Shown here: positions 43 to 57,706 of the stretch, in pieces
Layout: each line of letters starts with the position of its first letter
How positions within the stretch are numbered: the first letter of the stretch is position 1
Assembly: GCA_002269645.1 (NCBI GenBank)
Contig: NIVC01003608.1
Location: 1-64,000 of the forward strand
Length of the DNA stretch: 64,000 nt
Direction: 5' to 3'
Source: Macrostomum lignano
Taxonomy: Eukaryota
Notes under the pieces: generated by a model
What the model was told of the DNA's origin: nothing
Database searches by the model: none
What the model saw: the letters and a program-made list of their open reading frames with translations, nothing else
Translations under genes and position numbers: made by a program

Positions 43-260
43 TTATGCGTCAATCTGCGAGTCGATCTGCTTAGGCCGCCGGCACACCGTGGGGCGGGCC
101 ACCGCCTCCCCGACTTGCCGATGCTGATGCGCCTGAAGCTGCTGCTGCTGCTGCGCGCGGCTGCTGCTGGCCGCAATGGGCGGAATGTACGGCGCGTCGT
201 TGCTGCTATCTAAATCGCTGAAGCCGTACAGGCAATTCTCGTCTTGCTGAGCTTGAGAAG

Positions 261-307
<47 letters not shown>

Positions 308-3300
308 GCTGCTGCTGCTGTGGCGGCGGTGGCGGCGGAGGCGGCTGCTGCTGATGGGGCGCAGTCTGGTAAGGATGAAGCTGAGGCGGCAGCTGGTTGT
401 CTTTACCGGACGAGCCTCCGCCGCCAACAGCAGCGTCGGAATCGTCGAGTCCGAGGCGGACTGGCTGTCGTTAAAGGTGTCCGGAACTGGCCGGTTGGCT
501 AGAGCGTGGAGCAGCGGCGGCAGCGGGTGCTGCGGATGCATCTGGCGGTGGTGGCGCAGCAGACAGAGGCGCAGCCGGCAGCGATAGTCGCAGAGTTGGC
601 AGGCAAGCGGCCGAAGCCCCGTGTGCTTGCAGGTGTGGGCCCCCATGGCTGACGCGCTGCTGTACATCTTACCGCAGCCGGGCCACGGACAGACCATCCG
701 GCTGCCGTGCATCTCGGCGATGTGACGTCGAAGCTGCGAACGGCGACTAAATACTTGAGAACAGTTGCGCACTGGGCAATCATTCGATAGCCTATGTTGC
801 TGCTGTTGTTGCTGCTGCTGTTGTTGCTGCTGCTGCTGCGGTGGTGGAGGCGGCGGCTGCTGATGCAGTGGAGTCTGCGGGTACAGCTGCGGCGGCTGCT
901 GCTGCTGATGAGATGCTGCTGCTGAGCCTGGAGATGGTGCTGTGGCAGCTGCTTAGCGTGAGCCTGTGGTATGTTAGGGTGCTGAGGCATGGGCGTCTTA
1001 CTCGCCACCTGGGCTTGCATGCCACGCTGCTGCTGCTGCTGCTGTTGATGATGAAAAGCCGCAGCCTGCTGCTGACGGCGCTGCTGCTCCCCCTGCTGTC
1101 GTTCAAGTGCGGCAGCGGCGGCCTGCTGAGGATGGATGGACTTCACGTGCGATCGGAGAGACGATTTGCTGGCGTAGCTTTTGCTGCAGTGCTTGCACAT
1201 GAATTTGTGAGCTGGCTGAGCTGCCACCTGCTGCTGCGGCTGTTGCAGCTGCTGCTGCTGCTGCAAGTGCTGGAACTGCGGATGTTGCGACTGATGCAGC
1301 TGCTGATGATGCTGCGGGTGATGCTGCTGCTGCATCAGCTGCTGGTGGTGCTGGTGATGATGCGCAGCCGGCGGAGCGCCGCTAGCAGCTGCGGCGGCTG
1401 CGGCGGCCATGTGCGGCGCGGCGAAGAACTGCGGCGCGTACATCATCTGGGCGGCGGCGGCAGCGTGATGCGGCTGCATAGCGGCTGGGAACCCAACTGC
1501 GGCCGCGGCGGCGGCGGCGGCAGCTGCCCCAGGCTGTCGGAAATGTTGATGAGCAGCGGCCGCCAGCTCGTGCGGCTGTAAGTGAGATTGAGACTGCTGC
1601 TGCGACTGCTGCTGTTGCGGCTGCTGATGGTGATGATGCTGTTGGTGATGGTGCTGCAGGTGCTGCTGCTGCTGCTGTACGGCCGCTGGACCGCCGGCTG
1701 CCATGCCGGGCACCTGCGGTTGCTGCGGCGGCGGCTGCGGCGGCATGGGCTTGCGCGGAGGCACCCTGGGCGCGTGATATGCCTCGTATTGTTCCACGTC
1801 GATGCTCTCGGCGTTAGCCAGAATGTCGTCCAGGCCTGTCATAGCAGTGCCAAGCGATTTCCAATCCTTCGGGAGCGACGATTGCGGCGTCTTCTGCTGT
1901 TCTTCGGCCAATTCTGCCGGCTTCTCGGCCTGGGCCTGGTCGGGCTCGGCAGTGTCCGAGTCGCGCGGCTCGGCCTCGCCTAGCGACACGCCGCTCGTGT
2001 CCAACAAACTGACGCCGGTGTCGGCAGTCGGGACGGCGTTCGCCGAACTGGCACCTTCGCCATCGTCGCCGCGAGCCTGCTCGATTGCCGAAGTGTCGAC
2101 GGCGGTAGAATCCTCGGCTGCTAAAGATTCGCTCAAGTTAGGCGCAGCGGAGTCTTCAGTCTCTACTATTGGCTTTTTTGCGTCATTGCCATCTATGCCA
2201 GATTCAGTAGTTTCAGCTGCCGCCGTTTTTTCATCAGTGGCAGCAGTAGTTGATTCTAATGCGGAATCCGGAACAGCATCGGCAGCAGACGGCTCCGTAT
2301 TGAGCTTTTCTCCATCATTCAGAGCGGGCGCATCGTCTTCTGTAGCAGTCTCGGGCATTAAGGTCTCGTCTTGAACAGTAGGCTGCTTTTCTGGCAATTT
2401 CTCTGACTGGAATTCCGGACCGCGCTCGATGGAAGGCTCAGTCTCCATAGTAGCAGGCTGAGCTGCTGCAGCTGGGGCAACCGTTGGCGGTGCTAAATCT
2501 TCTTTTTCCAACTCAGCAGACTGCTTAATTGATTCAATAGACTGTTCAACCGACTCAGCAGGTTGCTCTGTCGACTCAGTGGACTGCTCAATCGACTCAA
2601 CAGACTGTTCGACTAAATCAGCATTAGCAGGCTGCTCAATTGACTCAGCTGACTGCTCAACTGACTCAGCTGACTGCTCGATTGACTCAGCTGACTGCTC
2701 AATGGACTCAGCTGGCATCTCAACCGACTCAGCTGACTGCTCAACCGACTCAGATGGCATCTCAACCGACTCAGCTGACTGCTCAACCGACTCAGATGGC
2801 ATCTCAACCGACTCAGCTGACTGCTTGATCGACTCAGCTGACTGCTCAACCGACTTAGCTAATTGCTCAATCGACTCAGCTGACTGCTCAACCGACTCAG
2901 TTGGCACCTCGACTGACTCAGCTGGCATCTCAACCGACTCAGCTGGCATCTCAACCGACTCAGCTGACTGCTCAACTGACGCAACTGGCATCTCGATTTT
3001 CGCGGCTGACTGCTCAACTGACTCAGCAGTAGGCTCAGCCGATTCAGTACTCTGCTCAACTGTGTTTGACTCAGCAGGCTGCTCAGGCGGCCCAGAAGAA
3101 TCGAATTCCTCTCCTAATTCAGCACCAGACGCTTGCTGCTCCATTTGAAACACCTCCGATGCAACTTGAGGCTCTGGCCGATCAGGCATAGATGATTCAG
3201 CAATGTTATTTTGACCTCCGCCAAAGTCTGCCACTTCCTGAGCTCTATCAGCTTTGACAGGCTCCATCTGTGCTTCAGTATTAGGCAATTGTTCTTTCAG

Positions 3301-3462
3301 AATGCTTGTGTCTGTTGGAGCAGTCAGACTGGAGTCCAAAAGTTCTCTAGCAGCAGCAGGGGCTGCATTATCTCTGATGGGTGGCGCACTGTCACAGTTG
3401 GAATTTTGGTCATTAGAGATGGCATCAGCTGGTGGAGGCGTCGGTGACTGAGCATCAGCCAT
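43..3462 (-). CDS. C2H2 zinc-finger protein (4 fingers) with long acidic N-terminal region and poly-Q/H/A/P tracts; intronless CDS broken by three apparent single-base deletions
   Basis: ORF 499..3480 (likely start MADAQ at 3462) contains CKHCSKSYASKSSLRSHVKSIH. A one-base shift at ~911 continues HQQQQPPQLYPQ...CPVRNCSQVFSRRSQLRRHIAEMH, CPWPGCGKMYSSASAMGAHTCKH-TGLRP (linker) and CQLCDYRCRLRLCLLRHHRQMH. Further shifts at ~447 and ~307 give DDSDAAVGGGGSSGKDNQLPPQLHPYQ...QQQ...DSQIDA and a TAA at 45-43. Confidence 0.85.
2500..3070 (-). repeat. Coding 21-bp tandem repeat (7-aa unit, S-V/I-E-Q/M-S/P-A-E) in the zinc-finger protein N-terminus
   Basis: Unit approximately CTGACTGCTCAACCGACTCAG on the + strand; translates as SVEQSAE / SVEMPAE / SIEQSAE repeats in frame. 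Confidence 0.85.
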
Positions 3463-4445
3463 GCAACGGCAGCCATGCATTAATTCAATTAGTAGAAGTA
3501 ATTAAACTTTTAACTTGATATTGCTTATTTGAATTTTTAAATCAGTTTCTATGTACCATTGTGCTATTCTCTAAAACCTATAGATAAGAAGTTGTAAATG
3601 ATGCCTTCTAACTAAAATGCAATTAAAGCATCATTTTTCAATAAAATACCTGTCAATGTTAACTTAATATTTTCAGATAACTTTGCCTGAAAATATTTTG
3701 TTTATCAGTATCCATTTTAAAAATTAAATGCTTCCTAGAAAGTGACAGGACAATTTAAACATATTTTAGTAGCAGAATTAAAAAGTTAAATTTTATCAAT
3801 AATTTTTTCTATGTTTTCATAAAAATTATTCTATAAACTAAAAAGTTTTTAAATAGAAAAATAGTAAAAACCAAAATGTAAGACCAAATAATATATTTCC
3901 ACTTTTAATCTTTTTAACAATTGAAAATCTATTTGTAACTTAGATATCAGTCAAAACAATATGTTCAAATAGCTCAATTAGATAATAAAAAATACAATAC
4001 AGAAATATCAAGTTTAAATTCAAGCTTTTAAATCTTAAGTCCATTATACTAAAATAAATTTTTTATATAGAGCTCTCTAACTCATATTTTACAGTTTAGA
4101 TATATACGCTTGTATATTTATGTGGGGAAAATTGTTCCTGTCTTTGAAATATCATTATTAAAATATTCATTGAAAAATTACTTTGTTTAGATATCAGATA
4201 GAAAAAATTATATTCTAGCTTTACTAATACTTATATTAATGGCAAATATCTATATTAAAATTATATTTTATTTACTTATTCAAGCTCTTGAAATTATTTA
4301 TGGTAAATTATAACTATAACTAGGCCCTTAAATTACAATTTATATGAGACTTTTAGGTCTGTATTATACAAAAAACAGTATACTAAAATAATTAATTAAT
4401 AAGAGATTGGTATCATATTGGGATACAACTTATAACAACCAACTT

Positions 4446-11649: not shown

Positions 11650-14035
11650 GAAGGAGACAGAGATGAGATGGTGGGAGAGGAGACAGAGATGAGATGGTGG
11701 GAGAGGAGACAGAGATGAGATGGTGGGAGAGGAGACAGAGATGCGAGGGTGGGAGAGGAGACAGAGATGAGATGGTGGGAGAGGAAACAGAGATGAGATG
11801 GTGGGAGAGGAGACAGAGATGCGAGGGTGGGAGAGGAGACAGAGATGAGAGGGTGGGAGAGGAGACAGAGATGAGAGGGTAGAGAGGAGACAGAGATGAG
11901 AGGGGAGAGAGGAGACAGAGATGCGAGGGTGGGAGAGGAGACAGAGATGAGAGGGGAGAGAGGAGACAGAGATGAGAGGGGAGAGAGGAGACAGAGATGC
12001 GAGGGTGGGAGAGGAGACAGAGATGAGAGGGGAGAGAAGAGACAGAGATGAGAGGGGAGAGAGGAGACAGAGATGAGAGGGTAGAGAGGAGACAGAGATG
12101 AGATGGTGGGAGAGGAGACAGAGATGCGAGGGTGGGAGAGGAGACAGAGATGAGATGGTGGGAGAGGAGACAGAGATGAGATGGTGGGAGAGGAGACAGA
12201 GATGAGATGGTGGGAGAGGAGACAGAGATGAGATGGTGGGAGAGGAGACAGAGATGAGAGGGTAGAGAGGAGACAGAGATGAGATGGTGGGAGAGGAGAC
12301 AGAGATGAGAGGGTAGAGAGGAGACAGAGATGAGAGGGGAGAGAGGAGACAGAGATGAGAGGGGAGAGAGGAGACAGAGATGCGAGGGTGGGAGAGGAGA
12401 CAGAGATGAGAGGGGAGAGAGGAGACAGAGATGAGAGGGGAGAGAGGAGACAGAGATGCGAGGGTGGGAGAGGAGACAGAGATGAGAGGGGAGAGAAGAG
12501 ACAGAGATGAGAGGGGAGAGAGGAGACAGAGATGAGAGGGTAGAGAGGAGACAGAGATGAGATGGTGGGAGAGGAGACAGAGATGCGAGGGTGGGAGAGG
12601 AGACAGAGATGAGATGGTGGGAGAGGAGACAAAGATGAGATGGTGGGAGAGGAGACAGAGATGAGATGGTGGGAGAGGAGACAGAGATGAGAGGGTAGAG
12701 AGGAGACAGAGATGAGATGGTGGGAGAGGAGACAGAGATGAGAGGGTAGAGAGGAGACAGAGATGAGAGGGGAGAGAGGAGACAGAGATGAGAGGGGAGA
12801 GAGGAGACAGAGATGCGAGGGTGGGAGAGGAGACAGAGATGAGAGGGTAGAGAGGAGACAGAGATGAGAGGGGAGAGAGGAGACAGAGATGCGAGGGTGG
12901 GAGAGGAGACAGAGATGCGAGGGTGGGAGAGGAGACAGAGATGAGAGGGGAGAGAGGAGACAGAGATGAGAGGGTAGAGAGGAGACAGAGATGCGAGGGT
13001 GGGAGAGGAGACAGAGATGAGAGGGTGTGAGGAGACAGATATGAGAGGGTGTGAGGAGAAAGAGATGAGAGGGTGGGAGAGGAGACAGAGATGAGATGGT
13101 GGGAGAGGAGACAGAGATGAGAGGGTAGAGAGGAGACAGAGATGAGAGGGGAGAGAGGAGACAGAGATGCGAGGGTGGGAGAGGAGACAGAGATGAGATG
13201 GTGGGAGAGGAGACAGAGATGAGAGGGTAGAGAGGAGACAGAGATGAGATGGTGGGAGAGGAGACAGAGATGAGAGGGGAGAGAGGAGACAGAGATGCGA
13301 GGGTGGGAGAGGAGACAGAGATGAGAGGGGAGAGAGGAGACAGAGATGCGAGGGTGGGAGAGGAGACAGAGATGCAATGGTGGGAGAGGAGACAGAGATG
13401 AGAGGGTAGAGAGGAGACAGAGATGAGAGGGTGGGAGAGGAGACAGAGATGCGAGGGTGGGAGAGGAGACAGAGATGCGAGGGTGGGAGAGGAGACAGAG
13501 ATGAGAGGGTAGAGAGGAGACAGAGATGAGAGGGGAGAGAGGAGACAGAGATGAGAGGGTGGGAGAGGAGACAGAGATGCGAGGATGGGAGAGGAGACAG
13601 AGATGCAATGGTGGGAGAGGAGACAGAGATGAGAGGGTAGAGAGGAGACAGAGATGAGAGGGTGGGAGAGGAGACAGAGATGCGAGGGTGGGAGAGGAGA
13701 CAGAGATGCGAGGGTGGGAGAGGAGACAGAGATGCAATGGTGGGAGAGGAGACAGAGATGAGAGGGTAGAGAGGAGACAGAGATGAGATGGTGGGAGAGG
13801 AGACAGAGATGAGAGGGTAGAGAGGAGACAGAGATGAGATGGTGGGAGAGGAGACAGAGATGAGGAGAAAGAGATGAGAGGGTGGGAGGAGACAGAGATG
13901 AGAGGGTGTGAGGAGACAGAGATGTGAGCGGAGAGAGGAGACAGGTGAGAGGCCGAAGAGACATGTGAGAGGGGGACAGAGGAGACAGGTGAGAGAGGGA
14001 GATATGAGAATGCGTGACTGAGACGCGGTGAGATA
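11650..14035. repeat. Purine-rich ~24-26-bp minisatellite (GAGAGGAGACAGAGATGAGAGGGTGG-like)
   Basis: Tandem units over 2.4 kb; source of the spurious 847- and 850-aa ORFs. Confidence 0.95.
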
Positions 14036-19081: not shown

Positions 19082-25962
<6,881 letters not shown>

Positions 25963-28045: not shown

Positions 28046-28645
28046 CCTTACCATTTAAAACTAAATCTTAAATTATAATCTTAGAATCTCATAGATCATA
28101 AATCTTATTACAGACATATCTTTAAGTCTAACTTGGGATCTGTTGCATTTAGACAGACATTTTCACTAATTTGTTTACAATTTTGTTTAGTATACTTATA
28201 AAGCACAAATTAGCTCTACTCCTAATATCAGGAGTCTTTGAAGTTACCAGTATATAATTTTAAGGATCGCATTAATAATGAGCTAAACTATGCCAAAAAC
28301 TGATCAGTGCTTTAATTCGCACTTTATCGAATAAACAAACTTTGAAATACCAACTTATCAAAAAAATTGTTTTCTAAAATGAAAAGCTTGCACCATTATA
28401 AGCTCCAATTTATCACTTTTGAGTTGCATTGCAGAAATAAAATAATTTCAACCTAACGAAGCATTGCTGAGTGCTTAAACTTAATTATGCTTGCTGTTTA
28501 TATTTGGTAAAACTGATCAGCAAAGAGAGCTGTGTAAATTTTACCCTCAACACTAAACAACAATGTGGTCAAGAGTCAGAGTTCAGAATCCGGTCAGTCA
28601 TTGTCTATGAAGCGACATCGATCTCAGATGCAGCGGAGAGCTCAT

Positions 28646-28834
28646 CTAACCGAAATGAATATGGATGAACTTCTTCTTCAGCTTCGGGCTCTGCTCCTGC
28701 GACAGGCTGGATTCGTCCAGGTTGGACAGAGTCTCCTCCAGCACACGTTCGGCGTGGGCCTTCTCCTCCTGGGTGGGCATGGCGACGGCCATGGCTGCGA
28801 ACAGCAAAAGTCCGAGAGCGAGTTGCCACTTCAT
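28646..28834 (-). CDS. Short secreted peptide precursor (62 aa), predicted to release FIHIHF-amide
   Basis: MKWQLALGLLLFAAMAVA (signal) - MPTQEEKAHAERVLEETLSNLDESSLSQEQSPKL (acidic spacer) - KKK - FIHIHF - G - stop. GC3-rich codon usage matches neighbouring genes, against an AT-rich background. Confidence 0.75.
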   Translation of the reverse strand: MKWQLALGLLLFAAMAVAMPTQEEKAHAERVLEETLSNLDESSLSQEQSPKLKKKFIHIHFG

Positions 28835-28914
28835 GATTGCTTGAGTCGAGTCGAGTCTTCGAGCTGTGTAGATTGAGTCGAATGTGAGATTGTTGTGTTG
28901 AGCAGTCGGCAATT

Positions 28915-28952
28915 CCGAATTTATGCACATCAGATTGGCACGTGTTTCCGGT
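28915..28952 (-). promoter_or_regulatory. Compact candidate promoter of the FIHIHF-amide precursor
   Basis: On the - strand: CCGGAAA (ETS-like), CACGTG (E-box), CCAATC and a TATA-like CATAAAT, in order, ~85-115 nt upstream of the ATG. Confidence 0.4.
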
Positions 28953-29749
28953 CCTAGGAGAAACGTTTGATTTGTCTGCATTCACGAGAGCAGAGTCTGA
29001 GTGACATCTCTTTATTTAATGACAGCTGTCAGTCAACTAGTTACATCAAAAGAGCATTTTCAGTGTAATTGCATTCAGCTCACTGCAGTGTAGTTGACCT
29101 TAGTTATTTTCGAAGTTACATTTGATGAAGCCTCTAATGATGAAGCCGTTGGTACTCTCGCAATGACGCTTCTCAATTCAATACCCAATTGTCTATGGCT
29201 AAAGTTGAGGCTCCTCCCCACACCCAGTCTTTTCACGTCCAGTAAGATAAGTTGAAATGGATTCTGAGAGTTATTAATTCCATAGAAGATGAAGCACGCT
29301 TTTCCGGGAACTATTTTTAGTGCTCATAAAGAGCGTGATGCAACTCTCGTGGATTTGCAGGGCACGGTCAGGGCCATAGACAAAAAGAACAAAAATTAAA
29401 GCCGCAACGAGATTTAGCATTTGAAATTGCGGGCACTATGAGAGTTTCATCATGCTCCATCGCACGATAAAATTGGTTTAAAGTATGTGCAAAGCAAAGA
29501 GTACCAAGCTAACAATTAGCACTGTACTCTGAGTATGTTTGGCAAATATTGTCCATGGCAAATATAGTAAAGAAACTTGGCAAAAAGACGCTGTTAGAAA
29601 TTAAAACAAAACGCAACGCGCATGCCAGAGCAGAAGGAAAATTTGTTTCGTGTAACCAGTTGGCGCTAAAAATCCGAAATAGAATCGTCGGGTACGAACG
29701 AGAGCTACCCGGAATCCATAGCTTGAGGGGCTTCCTCATTGAGTCATGA

Positions 29750-29975
29750 TGGCCAGGAGCCAGGAGTGACAGCCAGGAGCGACAGCCAGGAGGGACAACC
29801 AGGAGTGACAGAAGGAGTGACAGCCGGGAGTGACAGCCGGGAGTGACAGCCAGGAGTGACAGCCAGGAGTGACAGCCAGGAGTGACAGCCAGGAGTGACA
29901 ACCAGGAGTGACAGAAGGAGTGACAGCCAGTAGTGACAGCCAGGAGTGACAGCCGGGAGTGACAGCCAGGAGTGA
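29750..29975. repeat. 13-bp minisatellite (CCAGGAGTGACAG)
   Basis: Direct inspection. Confidence 0.9.
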
Positions 29976-37339: not shown

Positions 37340-39375
37340 TTAACAGGGTGGCTCTTTTATGTTCTACGCTCGTACATGGTAACTCTTTTATGTTTGATAC
37401 GGTGGCTTTTCAATGTCTGACATAGTGGCTCTTCTATGTTTGACATGGGGGCTCTTCTATGTTTGACATGGGGGCTCTTCTATGTTTGACATGGGGGCTC
37501 TTCTATGTTTGACATGGGGGCTCTTCTATGTTTTACAAAGTGGCTTTTTAATGTTCAAAAAGGTGGCTCTTTTATGTTTGACATGGTGGCTCTTTAATGT
37601 TTGACATGGTGGCTCTTTAATGTTTGACATGGTGGCTCTTTAATGTTAGACAAAGTAGCTCTTTAATGTTTGACATGGTGGCTCTTTAATGTTAGACAAA
37701 GTAGCTCTTTAATGTTTGACATGATGGCTCTTTAATGATAGACATGGTGGCTCTTTAATTTTTGACATGGTGGCTCTTTAATGTTGGACATGGTGGCTCT
37801 TTAATGTTAGACATGGTGGCTCTTTAATGTTCGACATAAAGTCACTTATATGTTTGACATGATGGCTCTTTTATGTTTAACATGGTGGCTCTTTAATGTT
37901 TGACATGGTAGCTCTTTTATGTTCGACATGGTGGCTCTTTAATGTTCGACATGGTGGCTCTTTTATGTTCGACATGGTGTCGCTTCAATGTTTGACATGG
38001 AGTTACGTATATGTTTTACATGGTGGCTCTTTTATGTTCGACGTGGTGGCTCTTTAATGTTTGACATGGGGTCTCTTCAATGTTTGACATGGAGTTACGT
38101 ATATGTTTGACATGGTGGCTCTTTAATGTTTTACATGGTGGCACTTTCATGTTTGACCTGGTGGCTCTTTAATGTTTGACATGGTGGCTCTGTAATGTTT
38201 GACATGGTGTCTCTTTAACGTTTGACATAGAGTCATGTATATGTTTGACATGGTGGCTCTTAAATGTTTGACATGGTGGCTCTTTAATATTTGACATGGT
38301 GGCCCTTTTATGTTCGACATGGTGGCTCTTTAATGTTTGACATGGAGTCATATATATGTTTGACCTGGTGGCTCTTGTATTTTTAACACGTTGGCTCTTT
38401 AATGTTCGACATGGTGGCTCTTAAATGTCTAACATGGAGTCACGTATATGTTTGACATGGAGTCATGTATATGTCTGGTATGGTAGCTCTTTAATGTTTT
38501 ACATGGAGTCACCTATATGTTTCACATGGTGGCTATTTTATGTTTGACATGGTGCTTCTTAAATGTTCGACATGGTGGCTCTTTAATGTTTTACATGGTG
38601 GCACTTTCATGTTTGACCTGGTGGCTCTTTAATGTTTGACATGGTGGCTCTTTAATATTTGACATGGTGGCCCTTTTATGTTCGACATGGTGGCTCTTTA
38701 ATGTTTGACATGGAGTCATGTATATGTTTGACCTGGTGGCACTTTCATGTTTGACCTGGTGGCACTTTCATGTTTGACCTGGTGGCTCTTTAATGTTTGA
38801 CATGGTGGCTTTTTAATATTTGACATGGTGGCACTTTCATGTTTGACCTGGTGGGTCTTTAATGTTTGACATGGTACCTCTTTTATGTTCGACATGGTGG
38901 CTCTTTAATGTTTTACATGGTGGCTCTTTAATGTTTGACATTGTGGCTCTTTAATATTTGACAAGGTGGCTCTTTAATGTTTAAAATGGTGGCTCTTTAA
39001 TTTTCGAAATGGTGGCTGTTTTATGTTTGACATGGTGGCTCTTTAATGTTCGACATGGTGGCTCTTTAATGTTCTTAATAGTGTCTGTTTTATGTTTGAC
39101 CTGGCGGCTCTTTAATGTTTGACATGGTAACTCTTTTAGGTTTGAAATGGTGTCTCTTTAATGTTTGCCATTGTGGCTCTTTAATGTTTGACATGGTGGC
39201 TTTTTAATGTTCGACATGGTGGCTCTTTTAGGTTTGAAATGGTAACTCTTGTATGTTTGATATGGTGGCTCTTTTATGTTCGACATGGTGGCTCTTTAAT
39301 GTTTGACATTGTGGCTCTTTAATGTTTGAAATGGTGGCTCTTTAATGTTTCGACATGGTGGCTCTTTAATGTTGA
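37340..39375. repeat. 23-bp minisatellite (TTTAATGTTTGACATGGTGGCTC), ~2 kb, inside Helitron B
   Basis: Direct inspection; period 23; diverged units. Confidence 0.95.
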
Positions 39376-46700: not shown

Positions 46701-49700
46701 GCTCACTTGAACTCCATCTTCTCCTTCAAATATTCCAGAAGTTCCAGAACCATCCCAGTGATCTCTACGGTGTTGTTCGGGTACACCTTCGTGACCTTGA
46801 CGAATGGCTGAAACTGAAATTGTCGGGAAAATCAGGAGAGTTTCAGGAAAAGTATATAAGTATCAAGAAAATGTCAGGAACATCACATCAGTAGGGTGTC
46901 AAAAACATCATTAGGGTGTCAGAATCATCAGTAGGGTGTAAAAAACATCAGTAGGGTGTCAGAATCATCAGTAGGGTGTAAAAAACATCAGTAGGGTGTC
47001 AGAATCATCAGTAGGGTGTCAGGAACACCAGTAGGGTGTCAGAATCATCAGTAGGGTGTCAAAAACATCAGTAGGGTGTCAGAATCATCAGTAGGGTGTC
47101 AGGAACACCAGTAGGGTGTCAGAATCATCAGTAGGGTGTCAGGAACACCAGTAGGGTGTCAGGAACATCACATCAGTAGGGTGTCAGGAACATCACATCA
47201 GTAGGGTGTCAGAATCATCAGTAGGGTGTCAGAATCATCAGTAGGGTGTCAGGAACATCACATCAGTAGGGTGTCAGGAACATCACATCAGTAGGGTGTC
47301 AGAATCATCAGTAGGGTGTCAGGAACATCACATCAGTAGGGTGTCAGAATCATCAGTAGGGTGTCAAAAACATCAGCAGGGTGTCAGAATCATCAGTAGG
47401 GTGTCAGGAACACCAGTAGGGTGTCAGAATCATCAGTAGGGTGTCAGGAACATCACATCAGTAGGGTGTCAGAATCATCAGTAGGGTGTCAGGAACATCA
47501 CATCAGTAGGGTGTCAGAATCATCAGTAGGGTGTCAAAAACATCAGCAGGGTGTCAGAATCATCAGTAGGGTGTCAGGAACACCAGTAGGGTGTCAGAAT
47601 CATCAGTAGGGTGTCAGGAACATCACATCAGTAGGGTGTCAGAATCATCAGTAGGGTGTCAGGAACATCACATCAGTAGGGTGTCAGAATCATCAGTAGG
47701 GTGTCAAAAACATCAGCAGGGTGTCAGAATCATCAGTAGGGTGTCAGGAACACCAGTAGGGTGTCAGGAACATCACATCAGTAGGGTGTCAGGAACATCA
47801 CATCAGTAGGGTGTCAGGAACATCACATCAGTAGGGTGTCAGAATCATCAGTAGGGTGTCAGAATCATCAGTAGGGTGTCAGGAACATCACATCAGTAGG
47901 GTGTCAGAATCATCAGTAGGGTGTCAGGAACATCACATCAGTAGGGTGTCAGAATCATCAGTAGGGTGTCAGGAACATCACATCAGCAGGGTGTCAGAAT
48001 CATCAGTAGGGTGTCAGGAACACCAGTAGGGTGTCAGGAACATCACATCAGTAGGGTGTCAGGAACATCACATCAGTAGGGTGTCAGAATCATCAGTAGG
48101 GTGTCAGAATCATCAGTAGGGTGTCAGGAACATCACATCAGTAGGGTGTCAGAATCATCAGTAGGGTGTCAGGAACATCACATCAGTAGGGTGTCAGAAT
48201 CATCAGTAGGGTGTCAGGAACATCACATCAGCAGGGTGTCAGAATCATCAGTAGGGTGTCAGGAACACCAGTAGGGTGTCAGGAACATCACATCAGTAGG
48301 GTGTCAGGAACATCACATCAGTAGGGTGTCAGAATCATCAGTAGGGTGTCAGAATCATCAGTAGGGTGTCAGGAACATCACATCAGTAGGGTGTTAGAAT
48401 CATCAGTAGGGTGTCAGGAACATCACATCAGTAGGGTGTCAGAATCATCAGTAGGGTGTCAAAAACATCAGCAGGGTGTCAGAATCATCAGTAGGGTGTC
48501 AGGAACACCAGTAGGGTGTCAGAATCATCAGTAGGGTGTCAAGAACACCAATAGGGTGTCAGAATCATCAGTAGGGTGTCAAAAACATCAGTAGGGTGTC
48601 GAAATCATCAGTAGGGTGTCAGGAACATCAGATCAGTAGGGTGTCAGAATCATCAGTAGGATATCAAAAACACCAGTAGGGTGTCAGAATCATCAGTAGG
48701 GTGTCAAGAACACCAGTAGGGTGTCAGAATCATCAGTAGGGTGTCAGGAACACCAGTAGGGTGTCAGAATCATCAGTAGGGTGTCAGGAACACCAGTAGG
48801 GTGTCAGAATCATCAGTAGGATATCAAAAACACCAGTAGGGTGTCAGAATCATCAGTAGGGTGTCAGAAAAACCAGTAGGGTGTCAAAACATTCGGTGCT
48901 CGGTGAAAGACAGCGAGTCGAGCCTCACATCCATAGTACACAGCAGCAGGGTGTCATTCTTGAACCCGGTGAAGGTGTTGGGAAAAGCCACCGGCTTGCC
49001 CCTGAGCCGGTACAGGTCGGTCAGCCCGCCCGCCGCGTTTCGGCGATCAAATCTACCGGAGCGCACAAAGTGCAGCGGCTCGCTTCGCCTCAGGTTGTAG
49101 GTGGCGTACAAGTCGATGCCGTATTGGCTGTCGAAATGGCGCGTCGTAGCGTTGAAGGAGATGGGGCCGCGCACGGTAGGGTAGTTGCGAATCTAGGAGA
49201 AGATGAGTAGAGGAATTCATCCCCTGTCCCTGTTGAAACGGACTCTGGTGCATTAGCATCCTAGCTCTCTCTCTTACTGGCTGATCAGTCTTTTGTCGGG
49301 CACCACCAGCCCATTGTGTGCAGCCAGTTGAACCCCTCCCGATTCTCATAGCCTAGCCCACCACCCCATTCTGTGCAGCCAGTTGAACCTCTCCCGATTC
49401 TCATAGCCTAGCCCACCACCCCATTCTGTGCAGCCAGTTGAACCCCCCCCCCCGATTCTCATAGCCTAGCCTACCACCCCATTGTGTGCAGCCAGCTGAA
49501 CCTCTCCCGATTCTCATAGCCTAGCCCACCACCCCATTCTGTGCAGCCAGTTGAACCCCCCCCCCGATTCTCATAGCCTAGCCTACCACCCCATTGTGTG
49601 CAGCCAGTTGAACCCCTCCCGATTCTCATAGCCTAGCCTACCACCCCATTGTGTGCAGCCAGCTGAACCTCTCCCGATTCTCATAGCCTAGCCCATTATC

Positions 49701-55700: not shown

Positions 55701-57706
55701 GGCACCGACATAGAGTTGGCCGCCCTGTTGAGTTCGTTGAGCAAGCAGCAGCTGCCAACTCCTACGATCGCTGATGTTGGCGTTGAATTTGAGCACACTG
55801 CGGGAGTGGGAGGTGGGACTTTGAGTTTCGGGTGAGATTTTTTAGACTGTGAGAGTCTGGGGTGAGATGTTTTAGACTGAGAGAGTCTGGGGTAAGATTG
55901 TTTAGACTTTGAGAGTCTGGGGTGAGATTCTTTAGACTGAGAGAGTCTGGGTTAAGATTGTTTAGACTGTGAGAGTCTGGGGTGAGATTGTTTAGACTGT
56001 GAGAGTCTGGGGTGAGATTCTTTAGACTGAGAGAGTCTGGGGTGAGATTGTTTAGACTATGAGAGTCTGAGGTGAGATTGTTTAGACTTGAGAGTCTGGG
56101 TGAGATTCTTTAGACTGTGAGAGTTTGGGGTAAGATTGGTTAGACTGTGAGAGTCTGGGGTGAGTTTATTTAGACTGTGAGAGCCTGAGATGAGATGCTT
56201 AGACTGTGAGAGCCTGAGGTGAGATTCTTTAGACTGTGAGAGTTTGGGGTGAGATTCTTTTGACTGTGAGAGTTTGGGGTAGGATTGGTTAGACTGTGAG
56301 AGTCTGAAGTTAGATTCTTTAGACTGTGAGAGTCTGGGTGAGATGCTTTAGACTGTGAGAGTCTGGGGTGAGATTTTTTAGACTGTGAGAGTCTGGGGTG
56401 AGATTGTTTAGACTGTGAGAGCCTGAGATGAGATTCTTTACACTGTGAGAGTCTGGGGTGAGATGCTTTAGACTTTGAGAGTCTGGAGTGAGATTCTTTT
56501 GACTCTGAGAGTTTAGGGTAAGATTGGTTAGACTGTGAGAGTTTAAGGTAAGATTGGTTAGACTGTGAGAGTCTGAGGTGAGATTCTTTAGACTGTGAGA
56601 GTCTGAGGTGAGATTCTTTAGACTTGAGAGTCTGGGTGAGCTTTTTTAGACTGTGAGAGTCTGGGGTAAGATTGTTTAGACTGTGAGAGCCTGAGATGAG
56701 ATTCTTTAGACTGTGAGAGTCTGGGGTGAGATTGTTTAGACTGTGAGAGTTTGGGGTGAGATTGTTTAGACTGTGAGAGTCTGAGGTAAGATTGTTTAGA
56801 CTGTGAGAGCCTGAGATAAGATTCTTTAGACTGTGAGAGTCTGGGGTGAGATTGTTTAGACTGTGAGATCCTGAGGTGAGATTCTTTAGACTGTGAGAGT
56901 CTGGAGTGAGATTCTTTTGACTGTGAGAGTTTGGGGTAGGATTGGTTAGACTGTGAGAGTCTGAAGTTAGATTCTTTAGACTGTGAGAGTCTGAGGTGAG
57001 ATGCTTTAGACTGTGAGAGTCTGGGGTGAGATTGTTTAGACTGTGAGAGTCTGAGGTAAGATTGTTTAGACTGTGAGAGCCTGAGATAAGATTCTTTAGA
57101 CTGTGAGAGTCTGGGGTGAGATTCTTTAGACTGTGAGAGTCTGGAGTGAGATTGTTTAGACTGTGAGAGCCTGAGGTGAGATTCTTTAGACTGTGAGAGT
57201 CTGGAGTGAGATTCTTTTGACTGTGAGAGTTTGGGGTAAGATTGGTTAGACTGTGAGAGTTTGAGGTTAGATTCTTTAGACTGTGAGAGTCTGAGGTGAG
57301 ATTGTTTAGACTTGAGAGTCTGGGGTGAGATGCTTTAGACTGTGAGAGTCTGGGGTAAGATTGTTTAGACTGTGAGAATCTGGGGTGAGATGCTTTAGAC
57401 TGTGAGAGTCTGGGGTGAGATGCTTTAGACTGTGAGAGTCTGGGAGAGTGAGAACAGCTGTGTCCACTCACCAGCGCCGCTCATTACCAGCGTGTCGTTG
57501 CCCTCCACCAAGCTGTAGGTCATTCGGTGCCCATTCAGCAGGCGCCAATTGTCGTTAACTCGTCGCTTCACCGACCTGTCAATCAGACTTTCGCTCACCA
57601 GAGAATTCTCCACGACAACTGACAGGTGAAAGTCTATGGCCGAACTTGGCCTGATGCTGAGCGCAAGCAGCAGGGCTGGAAGAAGAAGTCTTATAAGCAG
57701 TGCCAT
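40774..57706 (-). CDS. Divergent ionotropic glutamate receptor-family subunit (ATD + S1 + M1-M3 + S2 + M4), 12 exons, ~850 aa
   Basis: Exons (minus): 57706-57472, 55797-55654, 54836-54726, 54469-54073, 50761-50585, 49192-48929, 46813-46707, 46635-46542, 45051-44634, 43022-42817, 42663-42500, 41020-40774. Signal peptide; ATD motifs (AIVGVGSC, VRGPISF); S1 (QPFV...GMVLELL, DDGLWG, SRSRVVDF); pore SFLQQG; M3 WWLFTVIIYGAYTGDLTSALT; S2; M4 MEGVGGALII...LACE. All junctions are in phase except exon 4/5. Confidence 0.88.
41825..42500. repeat. 20-bp minisatellite (CACACAACTCA(T/C/G)TC(C/T)CCATT), iGluR intron 11
   Basis: Direct inspection; begins at the donor site. Confidence 0.93.
43180..43810. repeat. 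Polypyrimidine (CT-rich) tract, iGluR intron 9
   Basis: Direct inspection. Confidence 0.9.
44180..44640. repeat. 28-33-bp minisatellite containing the exon-9 splice donor (CACTCACCGGTGTGCTGTCAGCTCCCTT)
   Basis: About 15 units; the most exon-proximal unit overlaps the real ACACCG|GTGAGT donor on the - strand. Confidence 0.93.
45068..45520. repeat. 12-bp minisatellite (GACTCTATGCCA), iGluR intron 8
   Basis: Direct inspection. Confidence 0.95.
45603..46506. repeat. (TCTCAA)n hexanucleotide microsatellite, iGluR intron 8
   Basis: Direct inspection; source of the poly-LN/IE/RL/SI ORFs. Confidence 0.97.
46885..48892. repeat. 20/25-bp minisatellite (CATCAGTAGGGTGTCAGAAT / ...GGAACATCA), 2 kb, iGluR intron 6
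   Basis: Direct inspection; repeated blocks of monomer variants. Confidence 0.95.
49300..50490. repeat. ~55-bp satellite (CTGTGCAGCCAGTTGAACCTCTCCCGATTCTCATAGCCTAGCCCACCACCCCATT), iGluR intron 5
   Basis: Direct inspection; ~21 units. Confidence 0.95.
51225..51720. repeat. Polypyrimidine degenerate repeat (CCCTTCTCCCCTGCCCTCT...), iGluR intron 4
   Basis: Direct inspection. Confidence 0.9.
52406..52775. repeat. 34-bp minisatellite (GAGTGAGTCACGGCACTGA(T/C)A(A/G)GTGAACTGTGTT), ~11 units
   Basis: Direct inspection; each unit has TGAGTCA. Confidence 0.95.
53270..54082. repeat. 17-bp minisatellite (CCCCAATCTA(C/T)CTTGAT) overlapping the exon-4 donor
   Basis: About 45 units; the minus-strand unit ATCAAGGTAGATTGGGG matches the exon 4 end GATCAAG|GTAGAT. 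Confidence 0.93.
54870..55605. repeat. G-rich 20-bp (GAGTGACAGGTTGTGGGTGG) and 27-bp minisatellites, iGluR intron 2
   Basis: Direct inspection. Confidence 0.95.
55830..57450. repeat. ~30-bp minisatellite (TTAGACTGTGAGAGTCTGGGGTGAGATT(G/C)T), iGluR intron 1
   Basis: Direct inspection; source of the spurious 433-aa ORF. Confidence 0.95.

Follow-up and report, generated by a model that had tools for sequence, protein, structure and literature searches.

The stretch analysed here, hereafter the window, comprises 64,000 nucleotides of the flatworm Macrostomum lignano (contig NIVC01003608.1, positions 1 to 64,000). Its minus strand carries, from 28834 down to 28646, a gene for a 62-residue prepropeptide (MKWQLALGLLLFAAMAVAMPTQEEKAHAERVLEETLSNLDESSLSQEQSPKLKKKFIHIHFG, followed by a TAG stop). 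The gene is a member of a large, undescribed, lineage-restricted and tandemly amplified family of secreted prepropeptides. We are all but sure that it is a real gene of a transcribed family and that it encodes a secreted, processed peptide. The parts of the gene are the following:

28646 to 28834, minus strand: complete intronless coding sequence of the 62-residue prepropeptide, stop included (100% identity to BOX15_Mlig022070g2; hidden Markov model (HMM) of the family, E=7.9e-33)
28781 to 28834, minus strand: signal peptide MKWQLALGLLLFAAMAVA with a predicted cut between AVA and MP, from the sequence itself, which shows a hydrophobic core and, at -3 and -1, small residues
28670 to 28780, minus strand: anionic propiece MPTQEEKAHAERVLEETLSNLDESSLSQEQSPKL together with the KKK processing site, from the family alignment (net charge -2)
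28679 to 28780, minus strand: acidic spacer, from the translation
28670 to 28678, minus strand: KKK site, its KK invariant or almost so across the family alignment
28652 to 28669, minus strand: predicted mature peptide FIHIHF, in single copy, within the hypervariable tail region
28649 to 28651, minus strand: C-terminal Gly codon (putative amidation donor) abutting the stop, GGT followed by TAG or TAA being invariant in 16 of 16 genomic copies

The open reading frame (ORF) fills 28646-28834 exactly, from the ATG at 28834-28832 to the TAG at 28648-28646, and the residues around the cleavage site read AVA before the cut and MP after it. An earlier note on this DNA had described an ORF with a signal peptide, an acidic spacer, KKK, a single FIHIHF and a Gly-stop; all of these parts are present, on the minus strand. 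The translation thus holds a signal peptide, a basic cleavage site and a C-terminal Gly, as amidated neuropeptide precursors do. The Gly would be converted to an amide by the known pathway of peptidylglycine alpha-amidating monooxygenase. No intron is required, and neither is the splice extending the C-terminus that the note had seen as a danger to its prediction, since the gene models of the paralogues are contiguous. AlphaFold2, supplied with the family alignment, gave a mean predicted local distance difference test score of 62 and three low-confidence helices without a fold; the model places a helix over the signal-peptide segment and is uninformative for the tail.

Two other readings of the locus were rejected. 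The plus strand of 28646-28834 gives a meaningless translation, the gene being on the minus strand. A 111-residue ORF from the in-frame ATG at 28981 is not accepted as the product, because this ATG stands 5' of the TATA box that the family keeps, most paralogues lack it, and a start there would leave the signal peptide buried. A 103-residue antisense ORF (28565-28876, plus strand) spans the entire gene and is a by-product of codon composition.

A protein search with the ORF returned 14 clusters, all of them from Macrostomum lignano: the top match, BOX15_Mlig022070g2, is 100% identical over 62 residues (E=2.9e-31), and 13 further paralogue clusters follow at E<=7e-11. The doubt that the ORF arose by chance is thereby removed. 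The words "orphan" and "single-copy", which the earlier note had used, have to be dropped, since more than 30 other protein clusters of M. lignano have the same signal peptide, anionic propiece and KK site (BOX15_Mlig022070, 031167, 015779, 010443 and 024774 are among the family), its members number dozens, and FIHIHFG is encoded at at least four loci. Among 1.84 billion cluster representatives a profile of seven members picked out ten proteins at E<=0.001, from Macrostomum and one Logan contig only, and a word-indexed profile search gave 29 clusters in which every named match is M. lignano. The Logan match (P0015) comes from a 929-bp genomic contig of sequencing run SRR31628392, on which a similar ACGTGGCCA...GCATAAATA arrangement (L006:400-425) precedes signal-peptide codons closely resembling those of the family. 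In the 64-kb window this ORF is the sole match of the family HMM, and neither tblastn nor the HMM found further family copies there.

The members share a signal peptide resembling MKWQLALGLLLCAALA, an anionic propiece, a KK(K) site and a short hypervariable tail that usually ends in Gly or Gly-Lys. The signal peptide follows the pattern MK/RWQ(L/F)(A/V)LGLLL, in which M1, K2, W3, Q4, L7, G8, L9, L10 and L11 are (nearly) invariant columns; K54, K55 and the terminal G are also conserved in the family alignment. Of the KKK-FIHIHF-G end, which the earlier note had expected to find conserved in relatives, KK(K) and the terminal Gly are kept in the paralogues, but the exact FIHIHF tail is confined to its own subgroup.

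An exact-sequence look-up of the 62-residue product found no match, because the public models are "partial" and include translated in-frame 5' untranslated region (UTR). These models come from a genome-guided RNA-seq transcriptome, built with StringTie/TACO and de novo assembly (PMC5730564). The existence of an RNA-seq-based gene model therefore implies transcripts of at least near-identical copies, in agreement with the transcript that the note had required over the locus. Sequence and profile searches of the PDB gave no meaningful match, and neither a cathelin domain nor a dermaseptin-type preproregion was encountered in the Pfam, PDB and family searches. Pfam Lock_Gag1-like matches were regarded as spurious: those of the window ORF and two paralogues are sub-threshold and of low complexity, and that of P0011 scores 27.1 against a cut-off of 27 bits in a protein whose acidic segment is internally duplicated. 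Full-text literature searches, in an incomplete library, found no publication on the gene IDs, the tail sequences or a Macrostomum antimicrobial-peptide family. The family gene IDs have 0 occurrences in the supplements of PMC5730564, PMC5816591, PMC5946080, PMC12896417, PMC7336406 and PMC12732829.

Some annotated models of family members deviate from this structure. P0030 (BOX15_Mlig016106g1) carries an antisense-like leader (MCDVAHLTMKMNVEALLPQLRELLLRHL...) fused to a family member and is probably an annotation artefact at head-to-head copies. The models at L003 3486-17256 and 17002-20318, as well as P0035, encode 69-73 residues and either extend over more than 13 kb across several copies or leave the tail by a splice; in the latter case RVRAR is joined to TDVIWLALTTQLI, and the UniRef name is "SERPIN domain-containing". 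These models look chimeric, as products of multi-mapping reads, and provide no evidence for real C-terminal splicing.

The coding sequence lies within a larger unit that has been duplicated as a whole:

28465 to 29040, minus strand: duplicated gene unit of ~0.5 kb (promoter, 5'UTR, coding sequence and 3'UTR), to which blastn homology between copies is limited
28919 to 28944, minus strand: core promoter with E-box CACGTG (28944-28939), CCAAT (28938-28934) and TATA-like CATAAAT (28925-28919), almost invariant in 16 paralogues
29023 to 29028, minus strand: upstream E-box CAGCTG within the block TTGACTGACAGCTGTC, kept in most paralogues, at the 5' limit of the duplicated unit
28497 to 28504, minus strand: probable poly(A) signal variant AATATAAA, ~142 nt past the stop, inside the conserved motif CTGATCAGTTTTACCAAATATAA that is common to most paralogues

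The CAGCTG E-box stands ~85 bp upstream of the CACGTG E-box, and both are kept across the family. The tidy upstream promoter of the earlier note is real in so far as it is conserved in nearly all 16 genomic paralogues, with a core that is 88% identical on average. At the other end, AATATAAA may act as the poly(A) signal. Homology to the paralogous loci spans only about 28465/28537-29007 of the window, except for the copy at L003:14065, a cluster member of the FIHIHFG type, which alone shares longer flanks (window 28099-29753, about 90% identity).

Elsewhere the genes stand in dense tandem clusters. On NIVC01000619.1, of which ~88 kb was sampled, there are 14 intact copies and one pseudogene, and NIVC01000181.1 has six copies in 17 kb. 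The tails of the His type, in which hydrophobic residues alternate with histidine, account for 10 of the 14 intact copies on NIVC01000619.1, the one cluster sampled for this count (2 FIHIHFG, 7 GFHVHFHG and 1 FHLHLPGK). The pseudogene (L008:22306-22638) has lost its start, with NIKWQ in place of MKWQ, and its frame is disrupted after the propiece; therefore copies are both born and lost in the cluster. On NIVC01002033.1 a gene with a CRAL_TRIO domain (L005:10840-12569, minus strand) adjoins two family copies, so that some members sit among ordinary genes, outside the large clusters.

We take the window copy for a duplicate, either dispersed or homeologous, of one of the clustered genes. One could argue that it is a silent or decaying duplicate and that transcripts arise from the clustered copies only, as it is the sole family member in 64 kb, lies among minisatellites and belongs to a family with a known pseudogene. 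We regard this as very improbable: the ORF, the promoter block, the Gly-stop and the poly(A) motif are all intact, and the coding sequence differs from that of the annotated copy by 1 synonymous change while the flanks have diverged. CAC at codon 27 combined with GAA at codon 41 is specific to the window copy, as are some differences in its 5'UTR and 3'UTR.

The tails of the family fall into several structural classes on one scaffold. The alternating hydrophobic/Arg tails comprise FVRVHVRFG, IFRVHVRFG, IFRVRARIHIG, IFRVRVHIG, IFRVRVRIG, WLRVRARVRIG, FVRVRVRLG, FVRVRARIRLG and FIRARVRVRLG. The same prepro scaffold also carries a Pro/Arg-rich tail (FLRVRLPRVRMPRVRLPRVRLPRLRVRFRWSKK), a helical cationic tail (WRRRRRFRWRKAIRVAGKVAKAVL), a tail with two Cys (WRIKSACKIFRRLLHLARKCYAKKG) and long Arg-rich tails ending in GK (WRIRFRRIRIRWRRVYRV...GK, WRIRFRRIRIRWRRVYRVVRTAYRIYRHLPFPGK, WLLRRIRIRWRRVLRVASRVYRIYRYLPIGK and FRIRIRWGRVARNVLRLLGK); some tails are polycationic over 24-34 residues and contain no neuropeptide motif. 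GFHVHFHG and FHLHLPGK form a second alternating-His group, and the His-type tails sit on two different propiece backgrounds, one with FIHIHF and the other with GFHVHFH and FHLHLP. According to the alignment, FIHIHF can be obtained from a tail of the FVRVHVRFG type by a 6-bp deletion and the changes V>I, R>H and V>I.

One member and one branch depart further from the common form. In the paralogue at L003:17005-17295 (minus strand) the frame reads past the usual Gly-stop into WLRVRARVRVGSRRRSRSG, and its product may be amidated WLRVRARVRV with an extra basic extension, or something longer. A divergent branch (P0020 and P0033; BOX15_Mlig020534 and Mlig023778) ends in a Tyr/Lys decapeptide, AVYKPNYYKD or AVYKPNYNKD, which is not cationic-amphipathic. 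This decapeptide resembles the Tyr/Lys/Pro decapeptide repeats of mussel adhesive proteins. The branch might be an offshoot with a different function.

The regions of the gene have diverged very unequally. Over 16 aligned genomic copies the mean pairwise nucleotide identity is 0.95 for the signal-peptide codons, 0.88 for both the core promoter and the 5'UTR, 0.86 for the propiece, 0.67 for the tail, that is the mature region, and 0.57-0.66 for the 3'UTR; the tail is as low in identity as the 3'UTR. Nei-Gojobori proportions of synonymous and nonsynonymous differences (pS/pN) are 0.09/0.03 in the signal, 0.15/0.15 in the propiece and 0.41/0.31 in the tail. The tail is thus hyperdivergent at both kinds of sites, and its indels are multiples of three. 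The alternating pattern of the tails is nevertheless clearly under constraint. Between the four FIHIHFG loci 1-4 nt of the coding sequence vary, through four synonymous changes and a single H27Q; the tail is free of differences, all four loci using the same FIHIHF codons. The 170-nt flanks of these loci are less alike, with 3-15% difference 5' of the gene and 9-28%, plus gaps, 3' of it. This contrast indicates purifying selection, or conversion confined to the coding sequence.

Neuropeptide genes keep their peptide conserved while the spacer drifts. A constant prepro region with a hypervariable product is known from host-defence and toxin families such as the amphibian skin peptides, cathelicidins and conopeptides. 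The Macrostomum genes have the latter pattern, a conserved prepro region and a hypervariable mature peptide in multigene clusters; a peptide more conserved than its spacer and a low copy number were not observed, as the reverse holds and there are dozens of copies.

The proposal that the gene encodes the precursor of an amidated neuropeptide, hormone or pheromone, the tail of which would act on a receptor, has to be considered against this background. It accounts for the signal peptide, the basic site and the C-terminal Gly. Paralogue tails ending in HVRFG, RVRIG and RVRLG resemble FMRFamide-like and FVRIamide peptides, and both FVRIamide and RFamide are genuine lophotrochozoan neuropeptides. 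The precursors of these neuropeptides likewise combine a signal peptide, a basic site and a Gly donor, and some Macrostomum paralogues would yield -VRFamide, -VRIamide or -VRLamide. However, those precursors hold conserved peptides, often in multiple copies, with variable spacers and at low gene copy number, whereas the Macrostomum family has a conserved spacer, a hypervariable peptide and massive amplification. The -VRFG, -VRIG and -VRLG ends occur in some paralogues only; the window copy ends in -IHFG and would give -HFamide, so that it has no C-terminal -RFamide or -FVRIamide motif. Additionally, the dozens of copies stand in tandem, the long polycationic tails have no neuropeptide motif, and M. 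lignano has separate canonical precursors, such as that of FMRFa/YMRFa from Mlig001796.g3 (PMC9234716). Thus the new neuropeptide suggested by the earlier note fits poorly with genes that keep the prepro region constant, vary extremely in their product, stand in tandem by the dozen and carry tails whose structural classes are unrelated, and we hold a signalling role to be quite unlikely.

The charges of the tails and of their propieces point in another direction. Paralogue tails carry +3 to +14 and have high beta or helical hydrophobic moments; for the Arg-type tails the moment is 1.0-1.45 as a beta-strand compared with 0.2-0.8 at the helical angle. The net charge of the propiece runs from -2 for FIHIHF to -10 for tails of +11 to +14, and across 23 members the charges of propiece and tail are inversely correlated (Spearman rho -0.82, p=1.4e-6, uncorrected for shared ancestry). 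Such charge matching is a known trait of cationic defence-peptide precursors. The correlation also supports the view that the acidic prodomain keeps the product harmless or, as the earlier note had suggested, soluble until cleavage.

On balance we lean, if only slightly, to the reading that the family consists of secreted host-defence peptides, antimicrobial or toxin-like, that would bind and disrupt anionic membranes. This reading rests on the nearly constant signal peptide and propiece, the basic site, the hypervariable tails (mostly polycationic and amphipathic, and of several structural classes), the Gly or Gly-Lys ends, the charge-matched propieces, the tandem amplification and the restriction to a single lineage. 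The signal peptide would be removed after Ala18, and the propeptide would enter secretory granules, its tail neutralised there by the acidic propiece. An enzyme of the prohormone-convertase type would then cut at KKK, a carboxypeptidase would trim the lysines, and the alpha-amidating monooxygenase would turn Gly62 into the C-terminal amide, giving FIHIHF-NH2 with a calculated monoisotopic [M+H]+ of 812.457. Most paralogues would yield amidated peptides of 8-10 residues with strict hydrophobic/Arg alternation, for instance IFRVRVRI-NH2 and FVRVRARIRL-NH2, and these Arg-type products would form amphipathic beta-strands, cationic on one face and hydrophobic on the other. The window gene is a His-for-Arg variant, and its product would reach about +3 on protonation or metal binding of its His residues. 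The calculated charge of FIHIHF-NH2 is about +1 with neutral His, as at seawater pH, and +3 with protonated His. As a speculation, and as the most economical reading of this variant, acidic compartments or Zn/Cu could switch its activity or assembly.

Several points weigh against the host-defence reading. A peptide of 6 residues with about +1 at pH 8 is atypical of antimicrobial peptides, KR/RR would be a more canonical convertase site than KK/KKK, and the charge correlation has not been corrected for the shared ancestry of the members. In the tail pN/pS is 0.76, below 1, so that the Nei-Gojobori estimate leaves positive selection unproven, and the low synonymous divergence of the signal region could reflect gene conversion instead of selection. 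The window copy is solitary in its 64 kb, and its transcription is indistinguishable from that of near-identical copies. Literature searches by gene ID, by tail and by function found nothing on the expression site, induction, peptide detection or activity of the family.

The His-type tails allow a further reading, already raised for FIHIHF in the earlier note, namely that FIHIHF-NH2 and GFHVHFH-NH2 are metal-binding, self-assembling peptides that would form beta-sheet fibrils with a His face binding Zn/Cu. They would provide material for structure, adhesion or mucus, or a surface for catalysis, and would not be membrane-active antimicrobials. Zn-dependent catalytic amyloids such as IHIHIQI and IHIHIYI are designed on just this strict alternation of hydrophobic residues and His (PMC8431744). 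The His type also exceeds every other class in copy number in the one cluster sampled, occurs on two propiece backgrounds and retains identical FIHIHF codons at four loci despite diverged flanks; FIHIHF-NH2 would be nearly uncharged and very hydrophobic at seawater pH, which favours assembly. Against this, the His-type genes belong to a family whose other tails are plainly polycationic and of several structural classes, so that variation of R to H on one functional theme is the simplest account of them. The designed peptides, moreover, have seven residues and a cap at either end, while FIHIHF is a 6-mer with a free N-terminus. We judge this reading unlikely. The more specific idea, that amplified natural hydrophobic/His amidated peptides of 6-7 residues assemble with Zn/Cu after secretion into functional amyloid-like beta-sheets, seems to us less probable still. 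If it were true, the designed catalytic amyloid heptapeptides would have an equivalent in nature in the His peptides, which would serve as a material that can be switched, as a trap for metals, or as a surface with catalytic or antimicrobial action; the Arg-type sister peptides would correspond in nature to the designed beta-sheet antimicrobials.

Restriction to one lineage, tandem amplification and fast evolution are equally typical of the secreted proteins of reproduction. The tails could thus be rapidly evolving peptides of the seminal fluid or prostate, or of the egg or cement gland, shaped by sexual conflict and not by microbes. Reproduction-related genes of Macrostomum are reported to evolve fast (PMC7336406 and PMC5977470), which agrees with such an origin. 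But the family IDs searched for are absent from the supplements of PMC7336406, polycationic amphipathic designs with charge-matched propieces are no known hallmark of seminal proteins, and our searches found no positive evidence for this role; we consider it distinctly improbable.

The family, read as one of host-defence peptides, can be compared with several known systems. Precursors of the amphibian dermaseptin superfamily and of ranid skin are small and begin with a highly conserved signal peptide. An acidic propiece, a term that papers on frog antimicrobial peptides use, and a basic processing site come next; the C-terminus is a cationic peptide, hypervariable and in many cases amidated via Gly or Gly-Lys. 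As in the flatworm, they are multigene families, with a mature region that changes much more quickly than the signal region. The two are not homologous in sequence: the Macrostomum precursors have KK/KKK where the amphibian ones have KR, the host is a flatworm, and the products are much shorter (6-10 residues) with beta-strand alternation instead of an amphipathic helix. Clavanins and histatins are histidine-rich antimicrobial peptides of 23-38 residues, helical or unstructured, with pH- or Zn-dependent activity. By analogy, His may replace Lys/Arg in FIHIHF as a switchable cationic residue, and C-terminal amidation would be a further likeness; there is no homology with these peptides, and FIHIHF is a 6-mer beta-strand former.

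The closest likenesses of the products are designed peptides. IRIKIRIK-NH2 (IK8L), of the design (X1Y1X2Y2)n-NH2, is a broad-spectrum beta-sheet-forming antimicrobial (PMC4330034). It shares with IFRVRVRI-NH2, FVRLRVRI-NH2 and FVRVHVRF-NH2, its near-equivalents in the family, a length of 8 residues, a C-terminal amide (predicted for the latter) and the alternation of hydrophobic (I/V/F) and cationic (R/K) residues. The designed peptide is synthetic, whereas the paralogues are encoded in a genome and known from sequence; the window copy has His for Arg and is two residues shorter. Ac-IHIHIQI-NH2 and IHIHIYI (PMC8431744) are, like the predicted FIHIHF-NH2, short amidated peptides in which aliphatic or aromatic residues alternate with His, placing the His on one face of a beta-strand. 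FIHIHF has 6 residues where Ac-IHIHIQI-NH2 has 7, and its N-terminus is free where that of the design is acetylated; it contains two His and nothing that matches the polar seventh position. Any assembly, metal binding or catalysis by it is suggested by analogy.

The remainder of the window is rich in repeats. It contains 73 rows of tandem repeats (TRF), mini- and microsatellites with periods of 4-245 bp in arrays of up to ~2.3 kb, for example at 11652-13952, 20724-22062, 22374-23447, 37374-39373, 46885-48892 and 55823-57444; the arrays yield many long spurious ORFs in every frame. This density agrees with the 15% share that simple and tandem repeats are reported to have in the M. lignano genome (PMC5730564). 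Two other coding regions were noticed:

206 to 3480, minus strand: 993-residue ORF with acidic 7-residue (21-bp) tandem repeats (ESVEQSA), poly-Q, poly-A and poly-H tracts and C2H2 fingers (Pfam zf-C2H2), probably exons of a zinc-finger transcription factor
19945 to 25962, plus strand: coiled-coil-rich ORF segments with weak Pfam matches of the ATG16/CCDC type, separated by (CTGT)n and 20-25-bp minisatellite arrays that look like repeat-filled introns of a multi-exon gene

Free-living flatworms are models of regeneration and stem cells. We know of no well-characterised repertoire of gene-encoded antimicrobial peptides in them, and to our knowledge M. lignano is the sole flatworm with routine transgenesis. 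The kind of system described here is known; the family shows no sequence relationship to its known examples, and its ultra-short alternating R/H-hydrophobic products are unusual among natural peptides. Should the role turn out to be in signalling or reproduction instead, the amplification and the diversity of the tails would still be unusual. If the genes do form a defence repertoire, M. lignano would gain a tractable system of innate-defence effectors together with a compact conserved promoter of ~200 bp, which is possibly useful as a cell-type-specific driver for transgenesis in this animal. The strategy of a constant prepro region and a hypervariable warhead would then have arisen independently in Platyhelminthes, and ultra-short amidated peptides with alternating R/hydrophobic and H/hydrophobic residues, so far mainly human designs, would also be a product of nature.

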